In this document: positions 102 through 60,836 of the stretch, in pieces
How the letters are laid out: the number at the start of each line of letters is the position of its first letter
Numbering within the stretch: the stretch's first letter is position 1
IMG/VR virus record: IMGVR_UViG_3300042484_002457
Location: 145,544 to 209,543 of that record
Reading direction: 5' to 3' (one strand)
Length of the DNA stretch: 64,000 nucleotides
Translations under genes and position numbers: made by a program
Notes under the pieces: generated by a model
Seen by the model: the letters and a program-made list of their open reading frames with translations, nothing else
The model's database searches: none
Told to the model about the DNA's origin: nothing

Positions 102-2366
102 ATGAATCCCACCGCCGAAATTGAACACATTGTTGAACAATCTGTAGCAATTGCTCAAACATTTCAACACGAATATGTCACAACCGAGCACCTGCTGCTG
201 GCCATGGTTCGATATGCACCATTTCGAAAAACACTGGAGAATTTTGGTGTAGAAATTGACATGCTGGATCAAGACCTAACCAGTTATCTGAGTGGGTTAC
301 AAAATCTTGTTAAAGAAAATTCAGATCTAACACCCAAAAAGACCACGGCTCTGGAGCGTATTTTTAATCGTGCCAATGTGCAGGTGATGTTTACCGGGCG
401 TAGACAAATGTCCCTGATTGATGTTTATCTTTCAATCATGGCTGAAGGCCACAGTCACGCACAGTACTATCTCATGAGATACGGTGTGAAGAAAGTGGAA
501 TTTGTGGAGTTCTGGCAAAAGAACTATTCTGCCCAGGCCAGTGCCACTGGCATGAGTGTGAATCAAGCCAATGACATTCTCAACGAGTACTGCGTTGATC
601 TCAGTGGTCGTGCTGCCAAGAACGAACTTGAGCCCATGATTGGTCGAGACACTGAACTACAGGAAATGGTCACTGTGCTGGCACGACGCTTCAAGGCCAA
701 CGTGCTCATGGTAGGCGATCCTGGCGTGGGCAAGACTGCCATCATTGAAGGCCTGGCCCAGGAAATTCAAGCCGGTCGTGTGCCTGAGTTTCTCAAGGGT
801 CACGAAGTATGGAGTTTGGAAATTGGCTCGCTGCTGGCAGGATCAAAGTATCGTGGTGATTTTGAGGAAAAGTTCAAGGCCGTGGTGTCAGCACTGGAAG
901 CCAAGAAAAACTGTATCTTGTTTGTGGACGAAGCGCACACCATGAAGGGTGCTGGTGCAGGATCTAGCTCTAGCCTGGACTTTGCCAACATGCTGAAGCC
1001 GGCTATTACCAAGGGCAGTTTAAAAATCATTGCGTCAACCACCTGGGAAGAGTATTACGAAAGCTTTGAAAAGGATCGTGCCCTGATGCGACGTTTCTAT
1101 CGTCTCAGCATTGACGAACCTGATGCTGCGACCACAGAAAAGATTCTTATTGGACTCAGTCCACGCCTGGAACAGTTCCACAATGTGTTGATTGACACTG
1201 AAGCTATTACTGCTGCTGTGGACTTGGCCAATCGCTACATTCATGATCGCAAGAACCCTGACAAAAGTATTGACTTGATTGATGCTGCTTGTGCTCGGGA
1301 ACGTGTGAAAGATGCAGGCTTGACAACCATCAACAAAGGCATGATTGAAGAACAGCTGAGCCGTGTGACCAGTGTGCCTGTAGACAAGTTACAGAACGAG
1401 CGCAGTGCCAAGATTGTGGAGCTAGAAGGCAATATCAAGCAACGGCTGTATGGACAGGATTCAGCTGTGGACACTGTGCTGGAACGTGTGTACATTAACT
1501 TTGCTGGTATTGGCAACGAGCGACGCCCCATGGCATCATTCCTGTTCTTGGGCCCCACAGGCACAGGCAAAACTGAATTGGCTCGACTGCTGGCCGACAA
1601 CTTGGACATGAAGCTGTTGAAATATGACATGAGCGAGTTCCAAGAGCGTCACAGTGTGAGTGGACTTATTGGTGCTCCCCCAGGTTACGTGGGCTTTGAA
1701 GACGGCAACATCGGCGGCGGCAAGCTGATTGCAGACATCAGCAAGAATCCTTTTTCAATTATCTTGTTTGACGAGATTGAAAAGGCACACCCTGACGTTG
1801 CCAACATCATGCTGCAAATGCTAGACGATGGTGTGCTGACCAGTTCAAATGGCAAGAAAGTCAGCTGCAAGAACACCATTATCATCATGACGTCTAACCT
1901 GGGCGCACGTGATAGTGAAAGCAATGCAATTGGCTTTGGATCACAAGAAAAAACTGGTGAGGACGATCGTGCACTCAAAGAGCACTTCCGCCCCGAACTG
2001 CGAAATCGTATTGATGCTATCTGCAAGTTTGGGCGCCTGGACCAACTGGCCATTAAAAAGATTGTGCTGAAGTTTGTGGCTGAATTGCAAACCAGTCTTG
2101 GCAACAAAAACATACGACTCACTGTGACCGAAGCCATGGTAGAACACTTGGCCGAAAAAGGTTATGATCCCAAGATGGGTGCGAGGCCTCTGGGTCGCAA
2201 GATTGACGAGTTACTGCGTGTGCCACTCAGCAAGCGTATCTTGTTTGATCGCCTGGACAACTGTGATATCACAGCTGACTTGGTGGAAGGTGGGGTCAAG
2301 TTTGATATTGCAACACACGAGACCAGCTTGCTAGACAGTGACGGAATTATTCGTTTCCCAGCATGA
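102..2366 (+). CDS. clpA: ClpA-like ATP-dependent Clp protease ATPase subunit
   Basis: Clp N-domain, two AAA+ modules (GDPGVGKT/FVDEAH; GPTGTGKT/LFDEIEK), IGF loop (NAIGFGS), GARPL motif, no ClpB middle domain. Confidence 0.9.
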   Translation: MNPTAEIEHIVEQSVAIAQTFQHEYVTTEHLLLAMVRYAPFRKTLENFGVEIDMLDQDLTSYLSGLQNLVKENSDLTPKKTTALERIFNRANVQVMFTGRRQMSLIDVYLSIMAEGHSHAQYYLMRYGVKKVEFVEFWQKNYSAQASATGMSVNQANDILNEYCVDLSGRAAKNELEPMIGRDTELQEMVTVLARRFKANVLMVGDPGVGKTAIIEGLAQEIQAGRVPEFLKGHEVWSLEIGSLLAGSKYRGDFEEKFKAVVSALEAKKNCILFVDEAHTMKGAGAGSSSSLDFANMLKPAITKGSLKIIASTTWEEYYESFEKDRALMRRFYRLSIDEPDAATTEKILIGLSPRLEQFHNVLIDTEAITAAVDLANRYIHDRKNPDKSIDLIDAACARERVKDAGLTTINKGMIEEQLSRVTSVPVDKLQNERSAKIVELEGNIKQRLYGQDSAVDTVLERVYINFAGIGNERRPMASFLFLGPTGTGKTELARLLADNLDMKLLKYDMSEFQERHSVSGLIGAPPGYVGFEDGNIGGGKLIADISKNPFSIILFDEIEKAHPDVANIMLQMLDDGVLTSSNGKKVSCKNTIIIMTSNLGARDSESNAIGFGSQEKTGEDDRALKEHFRPELRNRIDAICKFGRLDQLAIKKIVLKFVAELQTSLGNKNIRLTVTEAMVEHLAEKGYDPKMGARPLGRKIDELLRVPLSKRILFDRLDNCDITADLVEGGVKFDIATHETSLLDSDGIIRFPA

Positions 2367-6765: not shown

Positions 6766-6793
6766 AGCGCCGGTTCCGCCGGCGCTTTCATTT
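6766..6793 (+). terminator. intrinsic terminator
   Basis: AGCGCCGG-TTCCG-CCGGCGCT then TTCATTT. Confidence 0.7.
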
Positions 6794-6811
6794 GTCCGCT
6801 AAATACACATT

Positions 6812-9800
6812 ATGAATATCGAAGAGTTAGATTCCTTCAATCTTGCAGACGCTGTGAAGTTTCACAATCAGTTAAATCCCCGATTGTGGGATCAGCGTGA
6901 ACATCTCAAGCCTGATGTGCACGCCAAGCTCATGGAAATTGCTAGAGATTTCCAAGAGTTTCTGGGCGTTCCTGACCTTGAAGTCAAGGACATCACAGTA
7001 TCTGGCTCAAATGCTGCATACAATTACACACCGCACAGCGATGTAGATCTACACCTTGTGGTGGATATGCCTGACGCTAAAAACAGCGAAGTGTTTCGCG
7101 AGCTGTTTGACGCCAAGAAATTCCAGTACAACGCTGAACATGACATTCGTATTGGCGGCTATGATGTAGAACTGTATGTGCAAGATGCTGAACAAGAGCA
7201 TCACTCACAGGGCATTTACAGCCTGTTGCAAAACCGTTGGATCAGTGTGCCCAAGAGACGCAAACCTGATGTAGATGATATCAGTGTGAAAAGCAAATAC
7301 CAAGATGTGGGACACAGAATTGAAGCTGCTATCCGTGGCGGTGACGCTGCACAAATGGAAGATGTTTGGAACAAACTACGTGTGATGCGCAAGCAGGGTC
7401 TTGAGCGTGAAGGCGAGTTTGCCCCAGAAAACATTGTGTTCAAGATGCTGCGCAACAACGGCACCATTGGCAACCTCAAACAAGCAAGACAGGCTGTGCG
7501 TGATCGAGAGCTGAGTCTTGCTGAAGTCAACCGCCCCAAGCAACGTGTGCATTATGGCTTTGTAAGTGAAAGCCCCGATGGTGTAAATCCCAGTACCAAG
7601 ATGTTTCTTGAAGAAGATGATGCCGAAAGTCTTGTAACTGAATTTATTTTTACCACGGCTGACAAGCTGGGCATTAAACGTATACCAAAAATTCATATAC
7701 ACACCAATGATGACTGGAGCAGAGAAAACAACAGTTTTGGAATGTTTGTTCCTGACACATATGAACTGCATGTGAGTTTGATAAATCGCCATCCCATGGA
7801 TGTGATGCGCACCATTGCGCACGAACTAGCACATGTCCGTCAACACGAGATCAAGCCGGTCAAACCCGGTGATGGAGAAACTGGAAGTGATGTTGAAAAC
7901 GAAGCGCATGCCATAGCTGGTATTGTCATGCGAGACTTTGCCAGCAGCCATCCTGAATATTTTGAAAAGCCTGCTGTGAGCGAAAGCTCGGGATACATTC
8001 CTACCCGAGCACAGGCTCAAGATCCTCGCTTTAAAATGGCCCTGACTGTGGACATCAAGCCAGGACAAACTGGTAAGGAAGCCAACAAGCTGGCCTTGCA
8101 AACAGATGCACAAGGCCGTCCAGCACTGTTGATGAAAACAGCAAACCTGCGTGAAGGCCGGATGCCGCAGCCCAGCCAAGGGCAGGGCCAGTATAGAGAT
8201 TTAAACAAGCCCCTGGGTCCAGAAACACCTCCTACCATGCCCGCAGGCACTGTCAAGGTAGATGTGAGTGATGTGTATGACTGGTACAAGCTGGGCAGTC
8301 ATATCAGCAACCTCAAAGGTCTGGGCAAACACGACTTTGGCGCAGGACCTCCTAGTACTATCATCAGTTTTGGTGATGAGGAAACTGAACACAAGTACAT
8401 CCAAGACCTTGAAAAAACTGGACTCACTACCACAGATATTGACCCCAAGGATCCCAAGCAGCCTCCAGGAATGAAACGTCAAAAGACTGATCCCACCTAC
8501 AACGTGGCAGAAGATGACATTGTAGAAAGCCTGCGTCAAGAATTTGCTTTGCTGGAAGACGAGTACATCAGCGAAATCAAAATGACCGGAAAGAACCTGC
8601 GAGCCGAAGCTGCTCAAACAGGTGCGCAGGCTGGCATGGAATTTGAAATGATTGTGCCCAACGTTGAGACCGAAGAGCTAGACCCTGAATACGAACCAGA
8701 CTGGGATCAGGATCAGCGTACTAGAAGCTTCAGTGACATTCGAGACTTTTTCCACGATGGAGACTACAACGGTCGTCGCGAAGCAGACAACCTAATGGAA
8801 GAAATACAAAACGAGTATGAAGAATGGCAAGCAGAACAAACTGACGAAGCCTGGGCTCGAGATGGAGTAGATTACATGCGTGACTTTGTTGAAGTCAATG
8901 ACTTGTTTGATCGTGAAGAAGCTATAGACACTGCTCGAGACGAGGTCATTGACGCTAACCCTGACTTGCCACCTGAAAGCAAAGACTTCCAGGACCTGCT
9001 TCGTGCCAGACTCGATGAACTACAAGAACAGTTTGTGCTAGAATCGTTTGAAGATCAAGGCCGCATCTACAATGACGCATTGCAAGCGTTTGCAGAAGAG
9101 CAAAGAGACGAATACGACGAACGCAGTTTCTTGGATGACAAGTATCCCATGATGACAGATATTCAAAGCAACTTTGATATTTCATGGCCCCACTACTACA
9201 ACATCAACGATGGTCAAGACAGTGGAGAAGTGGATGTAGATCAAGTAGCTGATGAGTTTGGCTCATACATGGGCAAACCTGTGAATGCCAGCAGACAATA
9301 CCATGGCGGTCGTCGCGAAGCAGGAACCTATGTAGTAGAACCCGACGGCAGCTTAGAAGGTGACAACCCAGGTGATGGTGGCCTTGAGTTTGTTAGTCCG
9401 CCCATGCCCATAGATGAAATGATTTCAGACTTGAACAAGGTCAAGGCCTGGGCAGACAAGACTGGTTGCTATACCAACGACTCTACAGGCTTGCACATCA
9501 ATATCTCAGTGCCCAATTATTCAATTGACAAACTGGACTATGTAAAATTGGCCATCCTCATGGGCGACGAATACATTCTGGACTTGTTTGGTCGCTCAGG
9601 CAACACCTATGCCAAATCAGCCATGGGCAAGATCAAGTCAGCACTGAAACAAAAACCCGAAGCGTCAGCACAAATCATGGACTTGATGAAACAAGGACTG
9701 GACGGTGCTGCAACCAAGGCCATACACACAGGTATCACAGACAAGTACACGTCAATCAACACCAAGACTGGCTATATTGAATTCCGTAGCCCCGGTGGTG

Positions 9801-10933
9801 ACTGGCTGGACAGCAATTTTGACAAGATTGAAAACACCCTGTTGCGTTTTACTGTGGCCCTGAGTGCTGCTATCAATCCAGAAGCATACCGCAAAGAATA
9901 CTTGACCAAGCTGTACAAGTTGTTGTCCGAAGGCATGGCGGACAAGAGTGACGTAAACATTATTCAGTTGTTCTCCAACTACTCAGCTGGTGAACTGGAC
10001 AAAGCTGCTCTAATCCGTCAAGTGCGTCAAAAGCAACTGGCTCGCAATGTTGCCAAGGGCAAGGCCACAGGCAAGATGTGGTGGAATGTTTCTAGACCAG
10101 GATACATGGGCAGCATCGAAGTTGTTGCTAACAGCAAAGAAGAAGCCATTGATGTTGCATTACAGCCGAGCAATTATCCAAACTGGGCAAGTGCTAGAAA
10201 TACATTACAGGCTAAACCATTACGTCCATACCAAGAAAAGCCAAGCGCACCTGCACAACCTGCTGCGGACAATCAAGGCAACTGGGGTATCTGGTTGGAT
10301 GCTGCAGAACGCTTTGTCCGAATACCTCGCACCGAAACTGGTGGCGACGGGCAAGCCTTGCGTAGATTCTCTAGCCAAGCGGCTGCAATGGCGTTCTTGG
10401 AGCGAACTCGAGAAGAGAATCCACTAATGAGAAGAGACATCAGCATTCGCGAAATCCCTGCAGACTATCAGTGGCCACCCGTTGCACCGGCTGTTAACCG
10501 CAATACGCTGACACCAACCGGTCCTGGACCTTGGGAAGTGTTTAGAATCAGTGACGGGTCAAGTGTAGCAGAGCTGGGGCAGACCAACCGCATGAGTGCT
10601 GAAGTAGAAGCTCGCGGAGTGATTGATCAACGTGGCGAAGCACCTGAACTGTATGGAGTAAGAACTCGTCAGTCTGACGCAGCACAAGGTGGCACAGTTG
10701 ATGTAGGGGGAGAAACACCTGCAACAGCACCGCAGACACTGACTCGTCCCGGACAAGGCCAACAACAGTTCACAGGCACATGGCGAGTGTTAGATCCTGA
10801 AGACCGTGAGATCTATCGCTTTAGTGGTGTGGGCAACAACCAATCAGATGCCAATCGTGTGGCCCTGAACTGGATGCGTCAAAATCCTGGTCGCATGCAA
10901 GCAGGTGTCACAGTGGTCCCGGAGATGACCTAA
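6812..10933 (+). CDS. 1373 aa multidomain protein: Pol-beta-type nucleotidyltransferase + zincin (HExxH) + amidoligase (COOH-NH2 ligase) + tandem small C-terminal domains
   Basis: VSGSNAAYNYTPHSDVDLH (GS...DxD); IAHELAHVRQHE; GMEFEM, EPDGSL, GLEFVSPP, STGLHINIS, YIEFRSPGG. Confidence 0.75.
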   Translation: MNIEELDSFNLADAVKFHNQLNPRLWDQREHLKPDVHAKLMEIARDFQEFLGVPDLEVKDITVSGSNAAYNYTPHSDVDLHLVVDMPDAKNSEVFRELFDAKKFQYNAEHDIRIGGYDVELYVQDAEQEHHSQGIYSLLQNRWISVPKRRKPDVDDISVKSKYQDVGHRIEAAIRGGDAAQMEDVWNKLRVMRKQGLEREGEFAPENIVFKMLRNNGTIGNLKQARQAVRDRELSLAEVNRPKQRVHYGFVSESPDGVNPSTKMFLEEDDAESLVTEFIFTTADKLGIKRIPKIHIHTNDDWSRENNSFGMFVPDTYELHVSLINRHPMDVMRTIAHELAHVRQHEIKPVKPGDGETGSDVENEAHAIAGIVMRDFASSHPEYFEKPAVSESSGYIPTRAQAQDPRFKMALTVDIKPGQTGKEANKLALQTDAQGRPALLMKTANLREGRMPQPSQGQGQYRDLNKPLGPETPPTMPAGTVKVDVSDVYDWYKLGSHISNLKGLGKHDFGAGPPSTIISFGDEETEHKYIQDLEKTGLTTTDIDPKDPKQPPGMKRQKTDPTYNVAEDDIVESLRQEFALLEDEYISEIKMTGKNLRAEAAQTGAQAGMEFEMIVPNVETEELDPEYEPDWDQDQRTRSFSDIRDFFHDGDYNGRREADNLMEEIQNEYEEWQAEQTDEAWARDGVDYMRDFVEVNDLFDREEAIDTARDEVIDANPDLPPESKDFQDLLRARLDELQEQFVLESFEDQGRIYNDALQAFAEEQRDEYDERSFLDDKYPMMTDIQSNFDISWPHYYNINDGQDSGEVDVDQVADEFGSYMGKPVNASRQYHGGRREAGTYVVEPDGSLEGDNPGDGGLEFVSPPMPIDEMISDLNKVKAWADKTGCYTNDSTGLHINISVPNYSIDKLDYVKLAILMGDEYILDLFGRSGNTYAKSAMGKIKSALKQKPEASAQIMDLMKQGLDGAATKAIHTGITDKYTSINTKTGYIEFRSPGGDWLDSNFDKIENTLLRFTVALSAAINPEAYRKEYLTKLYKLLSEGMADKSDVNIIQLFSNYSAGELDKAALIRQVRQKQLARNVAKGKATGKMWWNVSRPGYMGSIEVVANSKEEAIDVALQPSNYPNWASARNTLQAKPLRPYQEKPSAPAQPAADNQGNWGIWLDAAERFVRIPRTETGGDGQALRRFSSQAAAMAFLERTREENPLMRRDISIREIPADYQWPPVAPAVNRNTLTPTGPGPWEVFRISDGSSVAELGQTNRMSAEVEARGVIDQRGEAPELYGVRTRQSDAAQGGTVDVGGETPATAPQTLTRPGQGQQQFTGTWRVLDPEDREIYRFSGVGNNQSDANRVALNWMRQNPGRMQAGVTVVPEMT

Positions 10934-11919
10934 TGAGAGCACAAGAATTTGTAACAGAACTGTTTGAGCCAGGCAAAAAGTGGCAGTGGAGTTTTACTGG
11001 CAGTGAAGAAGCAGTAGCAGTATTTCATGTTGGTGAAGTGCCTTACATGTTCCATGCATATGGCGCCGTCGGTGAATGGGAAGCAGAGTTCAAGCGGTAT
11101 GGTAACAAACTAGATCGATCGCAAAAGTTTGGACTAACTGGCACTGGTAACTCAGCAGAAGTCATGAGCACAGTGGTTGACATCATGCGAGCGTTCTTGG
11201 AAAAATACAAGGACAAGATACAAGTGCTGACATTCAGTGCCAAGGAAGATTCCCGTCAGGGTCTATATGCCCGAATGGTCAAACGACTGCTGCCCGACTG
11301 GACCATGAAACAATCCGGTGAGCACTTTGTTCTTGTGGCTCCCAAACAAGATGTCACAGAAACATGGGGTGTTGAAAAGTATCCTATTCCGCTGCCAATT
11401 GGGCAGTACCTTGCTGTTGGTAGTGATGAGTTTGCTCCGCCGGGCAACTATGCCAGTGCAGACGATCTTGTGGATGATGTGTACGACTTGATAGATGCAG
11501 GTGTTGAGCCCACAGTGGTTGCAGTTGATCCCAAGACTCTGTTGGCCACACAAGACTGGCTTAGTAACGAAGGCGGCGGCGATCCCTTGTTTGACGAGTA
11601 CCCGGACAAGCCTGTGATATACAAGAAGGCAGGCAAGCTGTACATCCTTGACGGGCATCACAGAACCACACGAGCTTGGAAAGCTGGTAGACCTATTTCA
11701 GTATACCTGTTTGGGGACGATCAACAAAACGAACTGGACGAAAACTTTGCAGATGGCCGAAACCCACAAGACAAAGGTGATTCAAAGCGTCACGGTATCA
11801 ATACCAAAGCATCAGTTAGTAGTCTACGCAAAACTGCCAAACAAGGCGGCCGCAAAGGACAACTGGCACACTGGCTGGCTAACATGAAGTCTGGTAGAGC
11901 AAAGGCCAAACGAAAATGA
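10933..11919 (+). CDS. modular protein with capsid-targeting-like N-terminus, central ParB/sulfiredoxin-like domain and basic tail
   Basis: MRAQEFVTE-LF start; LLATQDW...PVIYKK...YILDGHHR ParB-like core; tail after LDE. Confidence 0.7.
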   Translation: MRAQEFVTELFEPGKKWQWSFTGSEEAVAVFHVGEVPYMFHAYGAVGEWEAEFKRYGNKLDRSQKFGLTGTGNSAEVMSTVVDIMRAFLEKYKDKIQVLTFSAKEDSRQGLYARMVKRLLPDWTMKQSGEHFVLVAPKQDVTETWGVEKYPIPLPIGQYLAVGSDEFAPPGNYASADDLVDDVYDLIDAGVEPTVVAVDPKTLLATQDWLSNEGGGDPLFDEYPDKPVIYKKAGKLYILDGHHRTTRAWKAGRPISVYLFGDDQQNELDENFADGRNPQDKGDSKRHGINTKASVSSLRKTAKQGGRKGQLAHWLANMKSGRAKAKRK

Positions 11920-12377
11920 GCGCATATCGACTTGATCCTTTTTATGGCATTGGTGCTGTTTCCTTGAATGCAAACACCGCTAGAGCTCAGATAGAGCTGC
12001 GACCCAGTATGTTTTTGAATTTGGCACACAGACTTGATGCCAACAGTGAATGTGCACTCCGTATAATACCCTACATCAGAACCAGATTGCAGTCAAGAGG
12101 TATTGGATATCCAATACTGCACATTGCGCCGCCTTTGGAATGGCGTAATAACGATTTTTCCAAACCTTGTCAAGTTATTGAAAGCAACGGACGCCATCGT
12201 ATGCATGCAATTATGGAGGTTCAAGGCGATGAACCTATTCCAGTATTGTTGGTACCTTGGCAAGATATTACACAACAAGAGTTAAATACATGGCTACCTC
12301 GCATGCGTGAGCAAATGCTCAGTCAGGATGGCGAGTTGGTATCAGGTCAATTATGGGATCAAACACATGAGAGCTAA
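11916..12377 (+). CDS. hypothetical protein, ParB-like motif
   Basis: VIESNGRHRMHAI...PIPV resembles ParB-N (D/E)GxHR core. Confidence 0.55.
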   Translation: MSAYRLDPFYGIGAVSLNANTARAQIELRPSMFLNLAHRLDANSECALRIIPYIRTRLQSRGIGYPILHIAPPLEWRNNDFSKPCQVIESNGRHRMHAIMEVQGDEPIPVLLVPWQDITQQELNTWLPRMREQMLSQDGELVSGQLWDQTHES

Positions 12378-12567
12378 AGAGTTTGTTAATGAAAGTGTTG
12401 CGCCGGGCTTTCACGTGTATCAAGCACGAGTCAAAGTCAACAATCCTCTTTACTCTAACAGTATTGATGTTGCAGTGTTTGCCAAAGGTCCGGCTATGGC
12501 TCGCGCTCTGTTACAGGCACAGTACGGCAAAGATAGTGTTGTGACCAACGTTACACAAATTGCATAA
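12367..12567 (+). CDS. small protein with capsid-targeting-like N-terminus
   Basis: Internal ATG 12367 gives MRAKEFVNE-SVAP (66 aa); followed by CTGTGGC-GCAAA-GCCACAG hairpin. Confidence 0.7.
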   Translation: MRAKEFVNESVAPGFHVYQARVKVNNPLYSNSIDVAVFAKGPAMARALLQAQYGKDSVVTNVTQIA

Positions 12568-15804: not shown

Positions 15805-16666
15805 GACATTTCTCTTTTACTTTGGCAAGGTGCCGATTAAAGTTGGCTATGGTCAAGGTGTCCCAATCCATTTGCATACTGAGACTGAGATCAGGTATGG
15901 CATCGCATATGGAATTGTGCGCGGAACCAAATCCAGCAATGTTGCTCAAGGTATTGTATTCGTAACGATGTTGTGCTTGGTATGTTACACTGCCCTGGGA
16001 CACTGCCCAGTTACCCAGTAGCTCGTATTCACTGAACCATTTGATAATGTTGCCTGTACCCCAAGGCGGAACTGTGGGCATCCCTGGTACCGCATCAATA
16101 ATTGCATCCAACCAGTGCTTGTTGGGCCAACGCTGTTGCAGATGTTCACGAAGTTTTACAAAATCTTTTTTTCTAACTGCACATAATTCAGTAACAAAGC
16201 AATGTGGTGATTGATGGCGCAACCCTGTGATGGCTTCAAACACCCCATTGTAACTGCCTTGGGTGGTGTTCATTAGTGACAACAAATTTAACTGATTGTT
16301 GGGATAGGGATTGTATGGCTCAAGCATAAATGTATCAGCATCGTGCATGAGAAAAACATCATGCTCCAATATGTCAAGATATGCTAACTTGATAGCTTGC
16401 TGGCGCAACCACCAGCCACGGTAGTCATCTGGAAACACCCAGTTGTTGACTTCAGGGTATTGTTTATATATTATGCTATCGTTAATGTATTCAAAGCGAC
16501 TGCTGTCAATATTGTATTTGTGCCAGACTGGCTCAAGTTCGTCCCGTGTCATTGGACTAGCAATCACTGTGGTATCAATACCTTTAAGGTTGTGATCCCA
16601 CTGCATAGCAAATGCTGCATGAGGCACACGATACTTGGCCAAAAACAAAACTCTTGCAACTGTCAT
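15785..16666 (-). CDS. GT-A-like glycan-related protein (paralog of 12602-13441)
   Basis: GWWLRQQAIKL, MHDADTF, FSEYELLG. Confidence 0.55.
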   Translation of the reverse strand: MTVARVLFLAKYRVPHAAFAMQWDHNLKGIDTTVIASPMTRDELEPVWHKYNIDSSRFEYINDSIIYKQYPEVNNWVFPDDYRGWWLRQQAIKLAYLDILEHDVFLMHDADTFMLEPYNPYPNNQLNLLSLMNTTQGSYNGVFEAITGLRHQSPHCFVTELCAVRKKDFVKLREHLQQRWPNKHWLDAIIDAVPGMPTVPPWGTGNIIKWFSEYELLGNWAVSQGSVTYQAQHRYEYNTLSNIAGFGSAHNSICDAIPDLSLSMQMDWDTLTIANFNRHLAKVKEKCHAIQSL

Positions 16667-17661
16667 GTTTGATTACAACTGTTGACACAGGCATATAACC
16701 TGCCTGTGGAAATACTAGTGTTTTGCCAAGATGCTTCCACCTGATCAAACCACTCCATACAATGCTCTAGACTATGCTCAAGAGCATTGTTTTCACGAAC
16801 CATGTCAGTTAATTGGCTGTTTCCTGGATGTGTCATTTGTCCAGGATAGAATCCCAAATAGCAACAGGGATAAACAGATCCATCGGCGGCCAAATATATT
16901 TCTCTATTGACTTTGTGTTGACATCTCAAATTCAATTGCTCAGTATCTTTTTGTAGTTGTATTGTTTTGGCATCAAACCATGTGACATGACTGTGAAGCA
17001 AAGCGTCAATAGGTGGCGGTGTTGATGCAGGGCCCAACCAATGCGAAAAGGTGCCATCTCGGGCATACACTGGCCCTGCATCGCGGCCATCATAGATGTT
17101 TTCAAACCGCGCAAACCCCCACTCCTGGGCCAATCTTTTGCATTCAGCTTCTTGGTGACGATTGTGATCAAACGGTACAAATCTCCAAAGTGCTTGCCCC
17201 CCAGCATTGATATAGGCACGAGCATTTTCTGTTACTCGATTCCAATCTGTATCTTGACGGTACAGTGCGTGGGTGTCAGCAAGGCCGTCCAGAGCAAAGC
17301 CTATAGTGACCAAGGGATGGGCCATCTGTGCCCACCAATCAGGGGTTCTTGCTCCCCCATTGGTGTTGATGTTTACTTGTATGCCCTGACTGCTCAACCA
17401 CTGCACAATTTCTGCTCCGTCTCGGGCCAGTGCAAAATCTCCAAGATTGCCGTTGAAATTTACAGCATAGTTGGAATTGAGTTTTAGTTGGGGTATCAAG
17501 GGCTCAATAATATGTTTAAACTCAGGTAGCCTAAGCTCGCATGTGGGATATCCTGAGTTGTAATCTACCCCGCGGTAGTTTCTTGGGCACATTGGACACC
17601 TGGCATTACACCGTGTTGTGAGTTCAACATGAACACGACGTATATCGCTAACTTTCAGCAT
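16663..17661 (-). CDS. radical SAM protein with SPASM/twitch-type C-terminus
   Basis: ELTTRCNARCPMCPR (CxxxCxxC); C-terminal C...DGSVYPCC; start at MLKV. Confidence 0.85.
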   Translation of the reverse strand: MLKVSDIRRVHVELTTRCNARCPMCPRNYRGVDYNSGYPTCELRLPEFKHIIEPLIPQLKLNSNYAVNFNGNLGDFALARDGAEIVQWLSSQGIQVNINTNGGARTPDWWAQMAHPLVTIGFALDGLADTHALYRQDTDWNRVTENARAYINAGGQALWRFVPFDHNRHQEAECKRLAQEWGFARFENIYDGRDAGPVYARDGTFSHWLGPASTPPPIDALLHSHVTWFDAKTIQLQKDTEQLNLRCQHKVNREIYLAADGSVYPCCYLGFYPGQMTHPGNSQLTDMVRENNALEHSLEHCMEWFDQVEASWQNTSISTGRLYACVNSCNQT

Positions 17662-17665
17662 TGGA

Positions 17666-17693
17666 TATTTATAGGCATACATTTTGCTAAATA
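17666..17693. promoter_or_regulatory. divergent pair of T4-like late promoters
   Basis: TATAAATA on minus strand (17673-17666) and TAAATA on plus strand (17688-17693). Confidence 0.6.
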
Positions 17694-19342: not shown

Positions 19343-22048
19343 ATGTACATTACACAACTATTACCACAACAAACGTCTAGCATTCGTAGACTAGACGAAA
19401 GTGTCCTATTAGAAGATCCAGTATACCGCAAGTTCAAGACTGTGGGTCGTTACATTGCTGAACGCCGCATGAGCGAAAAAGAAATTCTACAAGTATTTGC
19501 AGACGCCGAAGCAGGCATGACTGACAAAGCTACCGGAGCCAACCGTACTATGTTAGGCCGTGGCAAAGATACCACCATGGACTTTGCTGGCGGTGTAAAA
19601 GACGCAGTGTCTAGTGTACTCAACAGCATACAGAATTCAGTTCCTGTTGCCGCAGTAGATGTTGCTTATGACCAAGCCACTGACGCTTTGGCCAATATGG
19701 CTGGCGGACAAAAAGGCAAAGTCATGCAGGCCATCAAAGGCTATCGCAACTTGGTCAAACAGTATCCTAAAACAGCAGGCTTTGCCAAAGCAGCCTTGGT
19801 TGCTATCGCTGGTCTAGCCACAGGCGGTGCAGGGTTGCCTGCTATTGCAGGTTTGACCTATGCACTGGATTCGGCTATCCGTGGAGATAAACTATCCAGC
19901 GTTCTTGGCAAAGGTGCTGGCGCTACTGCTGTTACTTGGGGCGGTCAACAAGTGGCCGGTGCTTTGGGCGGTGGAGATGCTGCTACTCCTGATTCAAATT
20001 CTCAAGGTCCAAATGTTGATGATAGAATTGATGCTGCTAGAGCAAGAGTTGACGCAGCCAATTCCAAATTAGGAATAGACGGGTCTGCACAGAACTACGA
20101 TGTTACAGGTAATGTCAGTCAGGCTGCCGGAGTTGATACACCTTTGCCACAAGGTGCCACAGTAAGATGCCCGTTGGGATCATGCAATGGTGATGCATGG
20201 CAAGTGAAGCCTGGCGAAACTTTTAGCGATATTGCACAACAAATTGGTGTGCCACCAGAAGAGCTAGTTAAACTGAATCCTGGGCTTGCTGGACCTGGCG
20301 GCACTTATACTGTGATGAAAGGTGACCAACTGGGATTTATTGCTCAAGCGCAAGGAACAACACCCGAAGCAATTCGCGCAGCAAATCCAGATATTAATTT
20401 TTCCAAGGCATTGCAGCAAGGACAAGAAATCAATTTACCTGCTGCTGGTACTCCTGGTCAAGGCAGTGTGTGGGCAGATTACAAGGGCGGCATGTATGGA
20501 GACAAAGCAGCCGCGCAAACAGCAGGTTCTGGCACAGGATCTGTTGGACCAACAAATCTTGGACCAAATTTTAATCCGGACAATGTTCCTGCAGGTTGGA
20601 CAATGAAACAAGCACCTAGTCCAATAGACACAACTGCTGGAACTACTCAACGTTATATTCCACAGTCTGATGGTACTTGGATTGATGCTAGCACGGGCAA
20701 AGTTGCAGATGCTGCTAAACTACAAGCATCGCAGGACGCTGTGAGAAATGCGTTGCGCACAGGATTTAAAGAATCTATCAAGTTTAAAACACTGCCAGTT
20801 GACAAATTAATTGATCACAAACTCACTGTAATGTCTTGGGCACTAAATGAAAGTGTAGGCAAACCACAAGGTCAAAGCGTACAGCTGACCACTGCTGGTA
20901 CCTACACAGTGTTTGAAAACGTTGACCGATATCGCAAGGCCGTCATGGAACTCAAAGGTGTGCCAGGCAGCACACGCCCAGCTCAATATCGACCAGACAT
21001 GTCCGGCGGCGCCGGCGTGAAATCCAAGCCAGGGATTGTTGGCAAAGGCCTTAACTGGTTAGACAAAACTGCAGGCAAAGTAGGCGGAGCACTGAGCAAT
21101 TTTGGACATCAGTTTACTACTAACGTCACAAAAGAAAAACTCAAGATGAACTGGCACCAGGCCGGCAAGCCCAGTGATTCAGATCAATTGGCTGCTTGGT
21201 TAGCCAAACAAGGTGTGCCACAAGACGTTGTTACCAGTGTGTATAGCAAGATGGGTATTCCTGTTAGTGCGCCAAGTCCAGTCCCAACACCTGAGCCTGC
21301 GCCAATGGATACTAATCCCGCACCAACACCGTCTCCAACACCTGTATCGATAAATCGTTCAGGCATTGGAAGAATAGCAGGATCAACTGAAGTTGCGTCA
21401 GGCTTGATAAATCCCAAAACTAAAAAACCATACACTTATCAAGAACTCAGAGCCATGGGCAGCGAACCAGAGACTGCACCAACTACTCCAACTACGCCAA
21501 GTACAACACCAACAGTTGCCCCAGTAGGTTACAACGCCAAGAACGTTATGAACCTGCCAGGCATGGAAAAATATGCCAAGCAGCCTGCAGCGCCGGCCAA
21601 GACAGCCAACTTTGGCGTACCCAATGCATACAGCAAAACTACTACCACAGTTAAACCCATGGCTGGGGTACCTGGTGCCAAGACTGCTACACCAGCAGCA
21701 CCTGTTGCACCAGCAGCACCTGCAGCGCCTGGCGTACCAGCAGCACCTACAATGAAAATTGGTGGCCAGGCCTTGAATCCAAAGAATCCCGCCGATAAAA
21801 AGATCATTGACAAAGTACAAGCACAGGCTGAAAAAGTAGCAGAAGCTCTTGAAATACCTGTGTCCAAAATGCTAGACCTAGTTGAGACAAAAGAAGATGT
21901 GCGCCAGATTAAAAATTTCATTGATCAGACCTTTGTAAAATATGGTATGATAGGCGAAAGTGCATTTGTTGTTCGTAACAAATTGATTGAGCACGTGACA
22001 CATGTTGGCGCACAACGCCGTAGAGAGTTTGCCCGCAAGAACAGCTGA
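19343..22048 (+). CDS. 901 aa LysM-domain protein with Gly/Ala-rich hydrophobic helices and Pro-rich linkers
   Basis: Two LysM repeats (WQVKPGETFSDIA...LNPGL; YTVMKGDQLGFIA...ANPDI...QEINLP); GFAKAALVAIAGLATGGAGLPAIAGLTYAL. Confidence 0.75.
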   Translation: MYITQLLPQQTSSIRRLDESVLLEDPVYRKFKTVGRYIAERRMSEKEILQVFADAEAGMTDKATGANRTMLGRGKDTTMDFAGGVKDAVSSVLNSIQNSVPVAAVDVAYDQATDALANMAGGQKGKVMQAIKGYRNLVKQYPKTAGFAKAALVAIAGLATGGAGLPAIAGLTYALDSAIRGDKLSSVLGKGAGATAVTWGGQQVAGALGGGDAATPDSNSQGPNVDDRIDAARARVDAANSKLGIDGSAQNYDVTGNVSQAAGVDTPLPQGATVRCPLGSCNGDAWQVKPGETFSDIAQQIGVPPEELVKLNPGLAGPGGTYTVMKGDQLGFIAQAQGTTPEAIRAANPDINFSKALQQGQEINLPAAGTPGQGSVWADYKGGMYGDKAAAQTAGSGTGSVGPTNLGPNFNPDNVPAGWTMKQAPSPIDTTAGTTQRYIPQSDGTWIDASTGKVADAAKLQASQDAVRNALRTGFKESIKFKTLPVDKLIDHKLTVMSWALNESVGKPQGQSVQLTTAGTYTVFENVDRYRKAVMELKGVPGSTRPAQYRPDMSGGAGVKSKPGIVGKGLNWLDKTAGKVGGALSNFGHQFTTNVTKEKLKMNWHQAGKPSDSDQLAAWLAKQGVPQDVVTSVYSKMGIPVSAPSPVPTPEPAPMDTNPAPTPSPTPVSINRSGIGRIAGSTEVASGLINPKTKKPYTYQELRAMGSEPETAPTTPTTPSTTPTVAPVGYNAKNVMNLPGMEKYAKQPAAPAKTANFGVPNAYSKTTTTVKPMAGVPGAKTATPAAPVAPAAPAAPGVPAAPTMKIGGQALNPKNPADKKIIDKVQAQAEKVAEALEIPVSKMLDLVETKEDVRQIKNFIDQTFVKYGMIGESAFVVRNKLIEHVTHVGAQRRREFARKNS

Positions 22049-22476: not shown

Positions 22477-23112
22477 TTAATTTTTAGAAGCAGCTCTTCT
22501 CTGGTGTGCTAGTCTCATACGTTCTTTGGTCTCCGCAGAATGCGTTTTTCCTAGCATGCCCGACACTTTAGGTTTTTTACTGTATGTCTCTCTAAGAGAC
22601 TCTTTAATTTTCTTTTTTGTTTCTTCCGATCGCATCGATTTGCTACGCGAATTTCCAATTAGTGATTTACTAATTTTTTCCTTAGTTTCATCACTGGTTA
22701 TTTGCAAGGCTCGTTTATTGCGAATTTTTTGTTTGATTTTCTCAGATAGCATTTTGCCTGTTTGAGCAAGACGAATACTATTCTTGTGTTCTTCACTAAG
22801 TGATTCGCACTTGAATCGATTTTTTCCGTGAAAACAAGATCGATTCAATAGTAAATTGCTACCCCAGTTTTCAAATATCAATTGCTGTTCAAAATCGTAT
22901 GCATCATTGCCAGTATAAAACTCTGCAATAATATACCATACATAATCATCAAAGTTGTTAGAAACAATAAGGGATGATGTTTTATAATACATAAAATCTA
23001 CATTAGATGGTAATGTGTTGGCTTCTCTGTAGCCGATATAAAATTCTTTTGATTCTTTATGAATGCACATATAAACATACGGCATTGCCTTCGTTGATGG
23101 ATAAGTATTCAT
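22477..23112 (-). CDS. GIY-YIG-type homing endonuclease with NUMOD3 repeats
   Basis: YVYMCIH...FYIGYR; repeated (L/H)SEE.K.KI and GKTHSAETKERM motifs; start MNTYP after SD AAAAGGAG. Confidence 0.8.
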   Translation of the reverse strand: MNTYPSTKAMPYVYMCIHKESKEFYIGYREANTLPSNVDFMYYKTSSLIVSNNFDDYVWYIIAEFYTGNDAYDFEQQLIFENWGSNLLLNRSCFHGKNRFKCESLSEEHKNSIRLAQTGKMLSEKIKQKIRNKRALQITSDETKEKISKSLIGNSRSKSMRSEETKKKIKESLRETYSKKPKVSGMLGKTHSAETKERMRLAHQRRAASKN

Positions 23113-23180
23113 GCTGATTGCTCCTTTTAGCATTAGAGCCGGTGGATGCGTCCAACATCGCGACTGGCAACTTTATTTAT
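23113..23180 (-). promoter_or_regulatory. structured endonuclease leader (second copy)
   Basis: ATAAATA late promoter, nested hairpin, CTCTAATGC spacer, SD; homologous to 4651-4720. Confidence 0.7.
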
Positions 23181-30182: not shown

Positions 30183-30225
30183 GATTGATATGGAATATAT
30201 GCTAAATATCCGTAGAGGAAATGCT

Positions 30226-30942
30226 ATGAAATATTATGTGTATATACTATCTGACCCAAGAAACAACGTTCCTTTTTATATAGGTAAGGGCAAAGGCAAA
30301 AGATCTATGTCCCACCTTAAGGAAACAAAAGAAACTACAATCAACATTAGAAAATATAATAAGATACAATCAATTTTCAGTGAAGGTCTGACACCCTTGA
30401 TTTCTTACTATGCCACTGACTTGTCTGAGCAAGATGCTTATGAATTAGAAGCTTCTCTTATTAAACAATACGGACGCAAAGATTACGATGCTAACGGAAT
30501 CTTACTTAACATTTGTGAAAACAATCGCCCTCCTGGGCACGATAATTTTTTAACCAACAACCCTGGATTGAGGATGAAAGGGAAAACGTATGAGGAGATC
30601 TACGGTGAAGAAAAAGCCAAACAGTTAAAACTTCAAAGAACATTATCTTCTTCTGTAAGAGAAGTTACACAAGAGACTAAAGACAGAATGAAAGAATCTG
30701 CCCTTGTCAAGATGGCTAATGGATACAAAATGCCGTCAAGAAAAGGAAAGAGAGATTCTGAAGAGACACGTTTGAAAAAATCTTTGGCACACAGAGGCAA
30801 AATTAAGCCGTCGATGAGCGAAGAGACAAAGAAAAAAATTTCAGACACAAAGCGAAAAAATAGTAAAAAATTTTTAAACATTCAATATTTAAGGAAGTAC
30901 CATGGCCAAGCCTACATTCAAACCCAACCAGCGCCTGACTGA
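30226..30942 (+). CDS. GIY-YIG homing endonuclease with NUMOD3-like basic C-terminus
   Basis: YYVYILSDPRNNVPFYIGKGKGKR..H, E..LI..YGR, LLN; own TAAATA promoter 30203-30208. Confidence 0.85.
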   Translation: MKYYVYILSDPRNNVPFYIGKGKGKRSMSHLKETKETTINIRKYNKIQSIFSEGLTPLISYYATDLSEQDAYELEASLIKQYGRKDYDANGILLNICENNRPPGHDNFLTNNPGLRMKGKTYEEIYGEEKAKQLKLQRTLSSSVREVTQETKDRMKESALVKMANGYKMPSRKGKRDSEETRLKKSLAHRGKIKPSMSEETKKKISDTKRKNSKKFLNIQYLRKYHGQAYIQTQPAPD

Positions 30943-34135: not shown

Positions 34136-34837
34136 ATGACAGATACAAGCAAACACCTATCACAAGCAATCCGCGAGCGTATGAAATCCGACGGCAAGAG
34201 ATTCTGGGCCGGGGACAACATTAGTGAATACATCAAACCAGAAGAACGCAGACTGCTAATCGACGAGGCTGCAGAAGCATTTGAAGTAGTACTGGACCGA
34301 CTACTGATTGATCGAGAAACAGATCCCAACTCAAAGGGCACAGCCCGTAGGTTGGCCAAAATGTACTACAATGAAATAATGGCAGGTAGATATGAACAAG
34401 CACCAGATGCAACAGCATTTCCAAACGATTCGCAGGACCGCTACGAAGGTATGCTCGTGGTTCGCAGTGAACTTCGTAGTATGTGTAGTCATCATCACCA
34501 ACCCGTTGCTGGGGTTGCTTATATTGGCATTATTGCGGCAGAGAAATTAATTGGCCTCAGCAAGTACACCCGAATCGCACAGTGGTGCGCCCGCCGTGGT
34601 ACACTACAAGAAGAACTATGTAATGACATTGCTCGCGAGATTAGCAAGGCTACTGAATCAGAAAACGTAGCAGTATATGTGCAGGCAATTCATGGTTGTT
34701 GTGAGAATCGTGGTATTATGGCTCACAGTAGTCTTACACAGACCACAGTTCTTAGAGGCGCTTTCAAAGAAGATCAAAGTGTCAAGAAAGAGTTCTTTGA
34801 CAACATCAAGTTGCAGCAGGACTTTGCACCACGTTAA
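34136..34837 (+). CDS. folE: GTP cyclohydrolase I
   Basis: TARRLAKM, SMCSHHHQP, GLSKYTR, QEEL, HGCCENRG. Confidence 0.95.
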   Translation: MTDTSKHLSQAIRERMKSDGKRFWAGDNISEYIKPEERRLLIDEAAEAFEVVLDRLLIDRETDPNSKGTARRLAKMYYNEIMAGRYEQAPDATAFPNDSQDRYEGMLVVRSELRSMCSHHHQPVAGVAYIGIIAAEKLIGLSKYTRIAQWCARRGTLQEELCNDIAREISKATESENVAVYVQAIHGCCENRGIMAHSSLTQTTVLRGAFKEDQSVKKEFFDNIKLQQDFAPR

Positions 34838-36632: not shown

Positions 36633-37130
36633 ATGCAACCAGTAGTTTACAAATACACAAGTACTAAAGAATATCACGATGCGTTTCCGTGTGCTTATCG
36701 ACAATGGCGGGCCGACAGCCATTGCAATCTAATTCACGGATACAGCTTCTCAATGAAGTTCTATTTTGGCACCAACGATCTTGATGTTCGCAATTGGGCA
36801 GCTGATTACGGTGGCCTCAAGGAACTAAAGAAAATATTAGAAGACCAATTTGATCATACACTGATCGTGGCACAAGATGACCCTGAACTAGAAACCTTCA
36901 AGCTTTTACAAGAGCGCAAGATGGCCAAGATTGTTGTGTTGCCAAAGCTGGGCTGCGAAGGACTGGCTGACCAACTGTACAAGTTTGTGAACGGCATCTA
37001 TATTCCTGAAAACTGGGGACCTGGAGAAGCCGAACGCTTGTGGTGCTATCGTGTGGAAGTTCGCGAAACACAGGCAAACATGGCTTTCCGTGAAGGCCAC
37101 CGTGAATGGAACGAAGATTTATTTGCCTAA
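36633..37130 (+). CDS. queD: 6-carboxy-5,6,7,8-tetrahydropterin synthase
   Basis: FPCAYRQW...HCNLIHGYS, DYGGLK, FDHT, GCEGLA, VEVRET. Confidence 0.85.
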   Translation: MQPVVYKYTSTKEYHDAFPCAYRQWRADSHCNLIHGYSFSMKFYFGTNDLDVRNWAADYGGLKELKKILEDQFDHTLIVAQDDPELETFKLLQERKMAKIVVLPKLGCEGLADQLYKFVNGIYIPENWGPGEAERLWCYRVEVRETQANMAFREGHREWNEDLFA

Positions 37131-40943: not shown

Positions 40944-41789
40944 ATGAAATTAAAAGTAAGTGAACTATTTTATTCTGCACAAGGCGAAGGCCGCTATGTA
41001 GGCGTTCCTTCAATTTTCCTCCGCACATTTGGTTGTAACTTCACCTGTTCAGGCTTTGGTTGTAAGCCTGGAGAAAAAAGCACAGGTGCTGACGAAGTTG
41101 CCAAGACTGTGCATTTATACAAGACTTTTGAAGAACTGCCATTAGTAGATACTGGCTGCGACAGCTATGCTAGTTGGCATCCAGACTTCAAACATCTAAG
41201 CCCCACATACACTCCTGAAGAACTTGTGGAAAAGATGGCAGCATTGTTGCCTAACAATAACTGGCAACAACCCAACGGCAACCCTGTACACTTGGTTATC
41301 ACTGGTGGCGAGCCATTGCTGGGCTGGCAGCGAGCATATCCTGAGTTGTTGGACCTGTTGCACGAACGTGGTTTGCGACACATTACATTTGAAACCAATG
41401 GTACTCAAGAACTCACACGTGACTTCAAACAGTATCTGGCAAACTGGCACGGTGAGATCACATTCTCAGTAAGCCCCAAGCTGAGTGTATCAGGTGAGAC
41501 TTGGGCAGATGCAATCAAGCCAGATATTGTATGGGATTACGAAACACATGGCATCACTTACTTGAAGTTTGTGGTAGACAAGATTGAAGACTTCGACGAG
41601 CTGGATCGTGCTGTGGATGAGTATCGACTGCGTGGTTTCAGTGGCCCCGTGTTCGTGATGCCAGTGGGCGGTGTGGTTAGCGTATATGACAGCAATAGAA
41701 TTCATGTTGCAGACGAAGCACTCAAACGCGGTTACTGGTATACCCCAAGATTGCATGTGGATCTTTGGGGCAATGGCTGGGGGAAATAA
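40944..41789 (+). CDS. queE: 7-carboxy-7-deazaguanine synthase (radical SAM)
   Basis: ELFYSAQGEG, FLRTFGCNFTC..., VITGGEPL, FETNGT, SVSPKL, LKFVV, PRLHVDLWG; long insert before third Cys. Confidence 0.9.
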   Translation: MKLKVSELFYSAQGEGRYVGVPSIFLRTFGCNFTCSGFGCKPGEKSTGADEVAKTVHLYKTFEELPLVDTGCDSYASWHPDFKHLSPTYTPEELVEKMAALLPNNNWQQPNGNPVHLVITGGEPLLGWQRAYPELLDLLHERGLRHITFETNGTQELTRDFKQYLANWHGEITFSVSPKLSVSGETWADAIKPDIVWDYETHGITYLKFVVDKIEDFDELDRAVDEYRLRGFSGPVFVMPVGGVVSVYDSNRIHVADEALKRGYWYTPRLHVDLWGNGWGK

Positions 41790-51766: not shown

Positions 51767-51841
51767 CTGGCGTTCGTATAATGGATAATACAGGGGATTT
51801 CTACTCCCTAAATAGCGGTTCGATTCCGTTACGCTGGACCA
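51767..51841 (+). tRNA. tRNA-Arg(TCT)
   Basis: CTGGCGT/ACGCTGG, GGGGA-TTTCTAC-TCCCT, GGTTCGATTCC, CCA. Confidence 0.9.
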
Positions 51842-51854
51842 AACTACTACAAAA

Positions 51855-54857: not shown

Positions 54858-54864
54858 GGACCAT

Positions 54865-55773: not shown

Positions 55774-55782
55774 GGAATCGTT

Positions 55783-56370: not shown

Positions 56371-56375
56371 CAATA

Positions 56376-56461
56376 GCAACGCCAGCAGATGCTGACGTCG
56401 GATTATAAGGACGCATGGGATTGTCCCTTTACTAGATGTCATCTAGAACGCCCACCGTAGC
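56376..56461 (+). promoter_or_regulatory. structured 5' leader of dctP-like gene
   Basis: After ATAAATA; GCAACG/CGTAGC closing stem with CAGCA/TGCTG, GGGA/TCCC, CTAGAT/ATCTAG hairpins. Confidence 0.45.
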
Positions 56462-56497
56462 AGACAACTGCAAGCAAAACTCACACAAGGAAAAAAC

Positions 56498-57448: not shown

Positions 57449-57467
57449 ACTACAGTTTATTGCTGTA

Positions 57468-57725: not shown

Positions 57726-57727
57726 CC

Positions 57728-60835: not shown

Positions 60836-60836
60836 G

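Follow-up and report, generated by a model that had tools for sequence, protein, structure and literature searches.

A 1373-amino-acid open reading frame (ORF) on an uncultured viral contig raises the question of how a string of unrelated enzymes, made as one protein, could come apart and where its parts would act. The ORF occupies 6812..10933 on the plus strand of the stretch analyzed here (the window), which is the final 64 kb of the 209,543-bp metagenomic contig Ga0453661_0000005 (JGI 3300042484), catalogued in IMG/VR as IMGVR_UViG_3300042484_002457. Its product joins a Pol-beta-type nucleotidyltransferase (NTase), a zincin metallopeptidase and an amidoligase to at least six further modules. 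These unrelated globular domains, with a zincin as the hub (HExxH followed downstream by a Glu), place it among the phage polyvalent proteins, with a beads-on-a-string architecture. The initial annotation had proposed that the polyprotein is cut in the head and that the pieces are injected. In our judgment the best explanation, and probably the correct one, is an effector polyprotein that is cut in the capsid by a gp21-type protease and delivered together with the DNA. We infer cleavage, packaging, injection, the identity of the protease and the targets; the reading is supported by the placement of the candidate sites, module exchange among relatives, a cluster of genes with capsid-targeting sequences, an Alt-like start, a homologue found in virions and internal signal peptides. 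The parts of the polyprotein, all on the plus strand and with ↓ marking the position after a junction Glu, are as follows.

6812..10933, plus: polyprotein, 1373 amino acids in one ORF
6812..6826, plus: Alt-like N-terminal pentapeptide, MNIEE↓L (family consensus MN(I/L/T/F)xE↓LD)
6827..7525, plus: module 1, Pol-beta NTase and helical domain, residues 6-238, ending LAE238
7526..7618, plus: disordered linker, residues 239-269, predicted local distance difference test (pLDDT) <50, with a 67-residue insert in some homologues
7619..7984, plus: module 2, zincin metallopeptidase, residues 270-391, HELAH at 337-341 and E362, ending VSE391
7985..8155, plus: module 3, short conserved module SSGYIPT..., residues 392-448, ending LRE448
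8156..8512, plus: module 4, small alpha/beta module, residues 449-567, ending VAE567
8513..8575, plus: linker resembling a capsid-targeting sequence, residues 568-588, DDIVE↓SLRQEFALLE↓DEYISE↓, from alignment with the N-termini of free-standing amidoligases
8576..10066, plus: module 5, amidoligase (COOH-NH2 ligase, glutamine-synthetase-like fold), residues 589-1085, starting IKMT
10067..10237, plus: small domain W1, residues 1086-1142, ending YQE1142
10238..10453, plus: small domain W2, residues 1143-1214, ending IRE1214
10454..10930, plus: small domains W3 and W4, residues 1215-1373, with no conserved hydrophobic-x-Glu (h-x-E) separating them

The domain list of the initial annotation (an NTase, an HExxH metallopeptidase, two short modules, an amidoligase and four small C-terminal domains) is borne out by conservation, Foldseek, Pfam and AlphaFold. 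It had also called for AlphaFold domain parsing, and the limits obtained from models built on family alignments agree with the claimed domains: NTase and helical domain 14-240, zincin 270-388, short module 399-436, alpha/beta module 473-563, amidoligase 589-1083, and four small beta-beta-alpha-beta domains at about 1089-1139, 1158-1214, 1241-1285 and 1320-1372. The NTase carries the G-S...D-x-D...acidic signature of the Pol-beta superfamily on a Pol-beta fold, with G65-S66, D77-x-D79 and E120 invariant in 55 homologues; it matches PHROG 36119 (E=6e-47), falls under the Pfam cut-off for NTP_transf_2 (E=0.005, 17.7 bits against a cut-off of 21) and retrieves AadA, ANT(9), CdnE and MNT with Foldseek. 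This fold similarity prompts the speculation that small molecules or toxins of host defence might be AMPylated by an NTase of the MNT/ANT type. The zincin residues H337-E-x-x-H341 and E362 are invariant as well, and Foldseek matches this domain to abylysin and jannalysin, two minigluzincins (prob 1.0, TMt 0.58). The amidoligase belongs to Amidoligase_2 by its profile match (PF12224, residues 810-996, 26.1 bits, above the curated cut-off of 22) and by its glutamine-synthetase/YbdK-like fold, modelled with pLDDT >90 over most of the domain. Foldseek matches to glutamine synthetases and YbdK were weak (E ~0.01), those to BFVD entries named 'Amidoligase enzyme' reached 4e-39, with gp196 of Agrobacterium phage Atu_ph07 among the phage entries, and residues E610, E612, H831, E843, E859, H895 and R992 are invariant. 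NCBIfam profiles gave nothing significant for the three enzyme modules, and a protein atlas search with module 4 and W4 gave scores <=0.72 and no lead. Comparison of hidden Markov models of the four W domains with one another, and with the 66-residue proteins described below, found no relation other than a weak one between W3 and W4 (E=6e-4), because of which the idea that the W domains are four copies of one repeat is not upheld.

Conserved sites mark most of the module boundaries. More than 1500 homologues, 1080-2006 amino acids long, occur on metagenomic jumbo-phage contigs, and 119 of them were aligned for the conservation and breakpoint figures that follow. At the module junctions the hydrophobic P3 residue and the Glu of h-x-E are conserved in >=88% of sequences with P2 variable; YQE1142 is lower, with Glu in ~70%. 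Most of the boundary tripeptides named in the initial annotation are family-conserved (LAE238, VSE391, LRE448, VAE567, IVE572 and ISE588); two are not, namely VSE253, where Glu is present in 24%, and LEE268, where it is present in 53% (44% at FLE267). Additional conserved sites are I-x-E5, LLE582, YQE1142 and IRE1214. Glu391 and Glu588 are each found in 120/120 sequences, the former with L, V, I or M at P3 and A, E, F, Q or T at P2, and the pooled junctions read L 48%, V 18%, I 17% and Y 6% at P3, then x-E, with P1′ variable. The concern that such tripeptides are common by chance is answered by their placement: 8 of the 23 [ILVM]xE motifs in the query are found in linkers between domains, which account for 10.9% of its residues (p=0.002), Glu alone is not enriched there (13/112, p=0.44), and when a family-conserved h-x-E is defined by hydrophobic P3 and Glu both in >=85% of sequences, 8 of 15 fall in interdomain zones comprising 17% of residues (p=0.0015). 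The junction sites are conserved in low-pLDDT linkers and thus have the accessibility expected of (L/I)-x-Glu sites in gp21-processed head-internal proteins, and these (L/I/V/Y)-x-Glu motifs match, at the level of sequence, the known specificity of prohead serine proteases of the T4 gp21 family.

The same Glu residues are the points at which modules have been exchanged. Homologues vary in length because modules come and go, and in the N-terminal half the insertions and deletions begin and end exactly after the junction Glu at 238, 391, 448, 567 and 572; many further insertions begin exactly after E1142, past the first small domain. The comparison of homologues for shuffling at the sites that the initial annotation recommended thus finds breakpoints that coincide with junction Glu residues. 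Flanking BLAST segments overlap on a duplicated motif because each inserted module carries its own terminal h-x-E. Module 4 is missing from ~30 of the 119 homologues, a ParB_N-like domain, an M48 peptidase and cytidine deaminases are inserted in others, and module content turns over fast between relatives. The free-standing NTase g125 of cyanophage S-CRM01 ends ...KSLSL, aligned to ELSLAE238 and two residues short of E238. Four module families were found in two forms, either as a gene of their own after a targeting sequence or within a polyprotein after h-x-E.

Family 1: own gene MRAHEFIAE↓AFDQPYKGKWEKSEYGD; in polyprotein ...YNVSE↓AFDQPYPIKWEKSEYGD
Family 2: own gene MRANEFLIE↓YRDRLLQYVKSLLPTWPEYV; in polyprotein ...SLNE↓YRDRLLQYVKSLLPTWPEYV
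Family 3: own gene MRASEFVTE↓NFADGK; in polyprotein ...ELDE↓NFADGR (tail of the window ORF at 10933)
Family 4, amidoligase: own gene MRLREFIVE↓TPEMLDE↓VSM...; in the window polyprotein IVE↓SLRQEFALLE↓DEYISE↓IKM...

In the AFDQPY, YRDRLLQYVK and NFADG families the first residues after the Glu are identical in both forms; the amidoligase family keeps the aligned position with similar residues, ↓VSM or ↓VVM in the free-standing proteins and ↓IKM in the polyprotein. Linker residues 568-588 align with MRLREFIVE↓TPEMLDE↓ and MRFKEFVIE↓TPQLLDE↓ of free-standing amidoligase genes at two related loci (L241 and L260), which identifies the internal SLRQEFALLE as a targeting sequence that has been retained. 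These observations bear on one alternative, an unpackaged cytoplasmic multi-enzyme protein in which the conserved h-x-E motifs are linker features that have nothing to do with proteolysis. Such a reading of this gene would fit its non-structural neighborhood. It leaves unexplained why modules are exchanged exactly after Glu, why targeting-led and fused forms share identical mature N-termini, and why relatives have internal signal peptides and a homologue in virions (see below), and we regard it as very improbable.

How the protein would reach the head is suggested by the genes that follow it. In T4, a 10-residue capsid-targeting sequence sends proteins into the prohead core and is removed by gp21, with residues 8 and 10 governing processing (PMC9026906); internal proteins (IPs) IPII and IPIII start MKTYQEFIAE↓A (NC_000866). 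Exactly two ORFs with a T4-type targeting N-terminus occur in the 64-kb window, and both lie just downstream of the polyprotein.

10933..11919, plus: second, smaller polyprotein, 328 amino acids, whose MRAQEFVTE↓L start overlaps the stop of the first
11916..12377, plus: 153-amino-acid protein with a GRHR motif, without a targeting sequence and without a family match
12367..12567, plus: 66-amino-acid protein, MRAKEFVNE↓S, resembling a T4 internal protein

The ORFs at 10933 and 12367 thus have in full the N-terminal targeting feature of gp21-processed internal proteins. The first runs MRAQEFVTE↓, a DUF6934-like module, VTE↓, a ParB_N-like module (DGHHR), LDE↓ and a basic tail NFADG..., which in relatives is a separate 68-residue gene, MRASEFVTE↓NFADGK. 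Both of its modules are homologous to modules in the large polyproteins of other phages, with the junctions aligned; its ParB-like label comes from similarity to a homologue module that scores below the Pfam cut-off. NCBIfam searches with the ORFs at 10933 and 11916 and a Protein Data Bank (PDB) sequence search with the former found nothing significant. The protein at 11916..12377 is possibly ParB/Srx-like, and its membership of the cluster is uncertain. Orthologues of the 66-residue protein start MRAQEFIAE↓S and MRAQEFIVE↓G, and genes downstream of the polyprotein in two syntenic relatives open with MRAQEFVTE↓, MRASEFVTE↓, MRAQEFIAE↓ and MRAQEFIVE↓; very basic small proteins are included in the cluster. 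The association extends beyond these contigs, with 108 targeting-sequence ORFs in 1.58 Mb around 78 polyprotein loci (6.85 per 100 kb) and 2 in 1.35 Mb around 156 gp21 loci (0.15 per 100 kb). All 108 are on the same strand, and almost all lie 0-11 kb downstream of the amidoligase start. In our reading the polyprotein stands at the head of an enlarged locus for internal proteins in a T4-core jumbo phage. Other cargo led by a targeting sequence (L233:13480-14484; L010:15333-16139; L195:17875-19545) includes a GNAT acetyltransferase, a NUDIX hydrolase and DUF6321 proteins; in a related locus a NUDIX hydrolase replaces the ParB-like module after VTE↓, and a DUF6321 gene lies on the window's own contig ~7 kb upstream of the polyprotein, ~400 bp before the window start.

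The start of the polyprotein itself resembles that of another T4 head protein. T4 Alt starts MELITE↓LFD, which the family start MN(I/L/T/F)xE↓LD resembles, with E5 conserved in 99% and L6 in 100% of the polyprotein family. In T4, cleavage by gp21 falls at ITE-6 and LTE-619 of Alt (PMC5694885) and, in the internal proteins, behind residue 10 of their targeting peptide (PMC5694885, PMC9026906). An indirect link to virions comes from the free-standing amidoligases of cultured phages. Atu_ph07 gp196 starts MRWQDISSKKLTE↓LKMN and RsoM2USA_26 starts MKLIQKLSE↓LKM, so that their short propeptides end LTE↓LKM and LSE↓LKM, in alignment with the position at which the polyprotein reads ISE↓IKM. In purified virions, mass spectrometry identified Atu_ph07 gp196 (57.94 kDa) from 14 peptides covering 30.2% of the protein (PMC6102473 supplement). 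Its gene adjoins gp195 (L005:7130-8122), annotated as a nucleotidyltransferase (T4 GC1542-like), near the portal gene, an NTase-amidoligase pairing that seems to echo the polyprotein.

Signal peptides within the homologues provide a further line of argument. Every signal-peptide-like segment begins 0-5 residues after an h-x-E. One example in relatives is LEE↓GMVKNAGAAIALAAAMAMTPAQA-QQ, and IAE↓IDRRGVLKALGAG..., which precedes an M48 peptidase, passes the NCBIfam profile TAT_signal_seq (18.2 bits, cut-off 16.7). Internal segments of Sec or Tat type are located in homologues P0102 (residues 604-870) and P0005 (residues 415-530), and in P0009, P0086 and P0115. Because a signal peptide works at a free N-terminus alone, those that follow a junction argue independently for cleavage. 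Their position also argues that released modules would meet the export machinery of a living cell, and it suggests that some injected modules of relatives may be re-exported to the periplasm. This evidence bears on the possibility that the polyprotein is packaged and cut in order to serve the head or its assembly, as core or scaffold, as DNA-condensing basic proteins or as capsid- or DNA-modifying enzymes. T4 core proteins gp22, gp67 and gp68 are likewise cut into several pieces (PMC9026906, PMC5694885), very basic small proteins are encoded in the cluster, and the genes directly upstream include those for DnaJ and ClpB-like chaperones. A released module would have use for a Sec or Tat signal peptide in a living cell alone, however, and NTase, zincin, GNAT, NUDIX, ParB-like, deaminase and M48 are domain types of conflict effectors (PMC5512222); module content, moreover, turns over rapidly between relatives. 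We therefore consider a role confined to the head quite improbable.

The identity of the protease is a separate question, and an apparently active zincin within the polyprotein offers a second candidate for its processing. The embedded zincin could cut the polyprotein, and its neighbors in trans, at h-x-E before packaging, in the head or after injection. Its HExxH...E site is intact and invariant on a minigluzincin-like fold, and zincins are the hub of polyvalent proteins and the proposed releasers of their domains (PMC5512222). The same h-x-E sites nevertheless occur where this zincin does not, in ORF 10933, Atu_ph07 gp196 and RsoM2USA_26, and no homologue of the zincin module was detectable in the phages carrying the latter two. 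Recognition by zincins usually depends on P1′ and not on P3 and P1, and P1′ is variable at the junctions. The sites instead match T4 gp21 specificity, and the neighboring N-termini match the T4 targeting sequence. We consider cleavage by the zincin unlikely, and processing appears to be the work of a gp21-type prohead protease. Atu_ph07 gp204 is a gp21 protease (PF03420), and this family is present in the nearest cultured relatives. In an alignment of gp21 homologues, Atu_ph07-like prohead proteases have invariant LTE7 (L5-x-E7) and LVE19 in their own N-terminus, which as motifs fit the autocleavage proposed for T4 gp21.

Besides the presence of the zincin, several observations weigh against a polyprotein cut in the head. 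Its own N-terminus lacks an IP-type targeting sequence; the polyprotein has only the Alt-like MNIEE↓L start and the internal SLRQEFALLE. Pro occupies P1′ at YQE1142, the junctions past E1214 are less regular, and the small C-terminal domains are not all parted by a conserved h-x-E, W3 and W4 being the pair without one. The gene is surrounded by chaperones, sugar and nucleotide enzymes and replication genes, with head genes not among them. Neither gp21 nor a major capsid gene was found in the window or the 22 kb upstream, a region of the contig that holds replication-type genes alone; tblastn detected no gp21 or portal within +/-10 kb of 78 related polyprotein genes, and in these 78 loci the polyprotein was never <=10 kb from head genes. 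IMG/VR scans with gp21 and polyprotein queries had no contig in common among their best-80 lists, and blastn of gp21 loci against polyprotein loci found no match.

The proposed delivery by the head would proceed as follows. The polyprotein would be made late and taken into the prohead core, where the prohead protease would cut after each junction Glu to give separate enzymes. These would remain in the head and enter the cell with the DNA. There, nucleotidylation, proteolysis and amide ligation would alter components of the host or of its defences; in some relatives, cleavage would also expose Sec or Tat signal peptides, through which modules would be re-exported to the periplasm. A broader proposal is that the targeting sequence and h-x-Glu together form a universal connector of effector cassettes in T4-core jumbo phages, coupled to re-export to the periplasm by Sec or Tat; we put this combination forward tentatively, as a serious possibility that we do not yet favor. 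If it were true, a cassette could stand as its own gene or be spliced in frame, with the prohead protease releasing the same mature N-terminus from either, and phage effectors would be delivered in two steps, from capsid to cytoplasm and from cytoplasm to periplasm via host translocons.

Comparison to known systems indicates that the architecture belongs with phage polyvalent proteins and the delivery logic with the internal-protein/Alt system of T4. As in IPI, IPII, IPIII and Alt, targeting peptides end in (I/V/L)-x-Glu (MKTYQEFIAE in T4; MRAQEFIAE, MRAQEFVTE and MRAKEFVNE here), the polyprotein begins MxxI-x-E↓L like Alt, and the cargo consists of small basic proteins and an enzyme in a variable locus outside the head-gene cluster. 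Unlike in T4, the modules are fused into polyproteins of 1100-2000 amino acids with internal sites and with relics of targeting sequences as linkers, the enzymes are an NTase, a zincin and an amidoligase rather than an ADP-ribosyltransferase, and the phage that carries them is a jumbo phage not yet in culture. Polyvalent proteins (Iyer et al. 2017, PMC5512222) similarly combine unrelated catalytic domains in one polypeptide, among them a zincin and a Pol-beta NTase, and share ParB-like, GNAT, NUDIX and deaminase domains with the relatives and neighbors described here; their delivery with the DNA has been predicted. They differ in that processing by the embedded zincin was proposed and in that their NTases are mainly those of firmicute conjugative elements. 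The text of that paper has no match for amidoligase, gp21 or signal peptides, and prohead proteases and cleavage sites are absent from its main text, both terms being confined to the reference list. In the phiKZ-like giant phages phiKZ, 201phi2-1 and SPN3US, many head-internal proteins are cut after Glu by a gp21-related protease at S/A/G-x-E or A-x-E sites, sometimes several per protein, and the products pass into the cell on ejection (PMC5694885). The P3 residue there is small, in contrast to the hydrophobic one shared by T4 and the present family. Those phages also belong to another lineage, which has no targeting sequence of T4 type, and in the literature searched we came across no similar array of unrelated enzymes in them. 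The amidoligases Atu_ph07 gp196 (AUZ94978.1) and RsoM2USA_26 are homologous to module 5 (30% identity, L-x-E↓LKM; Foldseek E=2e-13 for gp196), but they are free-standing proteins of 500-523 amino acids outside any polyprotein. DarB and DdrB of phage P1 are also large multidomain head proteins, with an anti-restriction function, and one is processed before or during packaging (PMC5512222); their lineage, domains and targeting route are unrelated. In the literature searched we found no description of strings of unrelated enzymes joined by prohead-protease sites, of targeting-sequence relics serving as linkers with exchange between gene and fused forms, or of internal signal peptides unmasked by cleavage.

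The window is phage DNA. Its genes include those for a family B DNA polymerase of T4 type, for an exonuclease and homing endonucleases, for enzymes of 7-deazaguanine synthesis and for eight tRNAs. The polymerase shares 52% identity with that of Sinorhizobium phage Phosso, 47% with that of Atu_ph07 and 43-44% with those of Rak2-like jumbo phages; these are the jumbo phages of 'group 2.2', whose capsid is of gp23 type (PMC7824862). On these grounds we classify the phage as an uncultured T4-core jumbo myovirus; a search for near-identical DNA in cultured phages found none. The polymerase is a single 818-residue ORF here and is annotated as two pieces in Atu_ph07, and homing-endonuclease-like genes lie on either side of its region (22477-23133, minus; 30190-30942, plus). 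Upstream of the polyprotein are a 754-residue ClpB/ClpA-like double AAA+ chaperone (window 102-2366) and, directly before the window, a DnaJ co-chaperone gene (L001:2462-3223), both syntenic with the polyprotein locus in 3/3 related contigs examined. GTP cyclohydrolase I, QueD-like and QueE-like genes (34136-34837, 36633-37130 and 40944-41789) probably form a 7-deazaguanine (preQ0-type) pathway for modifying phage DNA; the ORFs scanned included no recognizable transglycosylase (DpdA/Tgt). A further radical-SAM protein is encoded at 16663-17682 on the minus strand, and a 901-residue protein at 19343-22048 has two LysM repeats and no further recognized domain. The tRNA genes (Arg, Leu x2, Glu x2, Asp x2 and Tyr) lie at 51767-63110, at the contig end, mixed with small ORFs. 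One feature immediately precedes the polyprotein.

6766..6805, plus: terminator-like hairpin (6766-6786), then GCTAAATA (6798-6805), 6 nt 5′ of the ATG

The gene probably opens its own transcription unit, with GCTAAATA as the predicted promoter. The TAAATA core of GCTAAATA resembles the T4 late promoter TATAAATA, and GCTAAATA occurs 4-11 nt 5′ of an ATG at four plus-strand places (2997, 6798, 17687 and 61965); it may be a T4-late-like promoter core, which we note as a lead. The canonical TATAAATA has 4 matches in the window (1.4 expected), none of them directly before the polyprotein; one is at 4717, before ORF 4746.

The identity, selection and maturation of the proteins that phages inject with their DNA are known for few model phages. 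A T4-like targeting peptide together with h-x-Glu provides a sequence rule that marks candidate injected enzymes in abundant uncultured jumbo phages, and it offers an alternative to the idea that polyvalent proteins are cut by their own zincin. The connector rule could also be borrowed as a natural design by which foreign proteins are loaded into T4-like capsids. Since it covers a large and fast-evolving set, with >1500 polyprotein homologues and dozens of cassette types, the rule yields many modules that are candidates for functions in host take-over or anti-defence.

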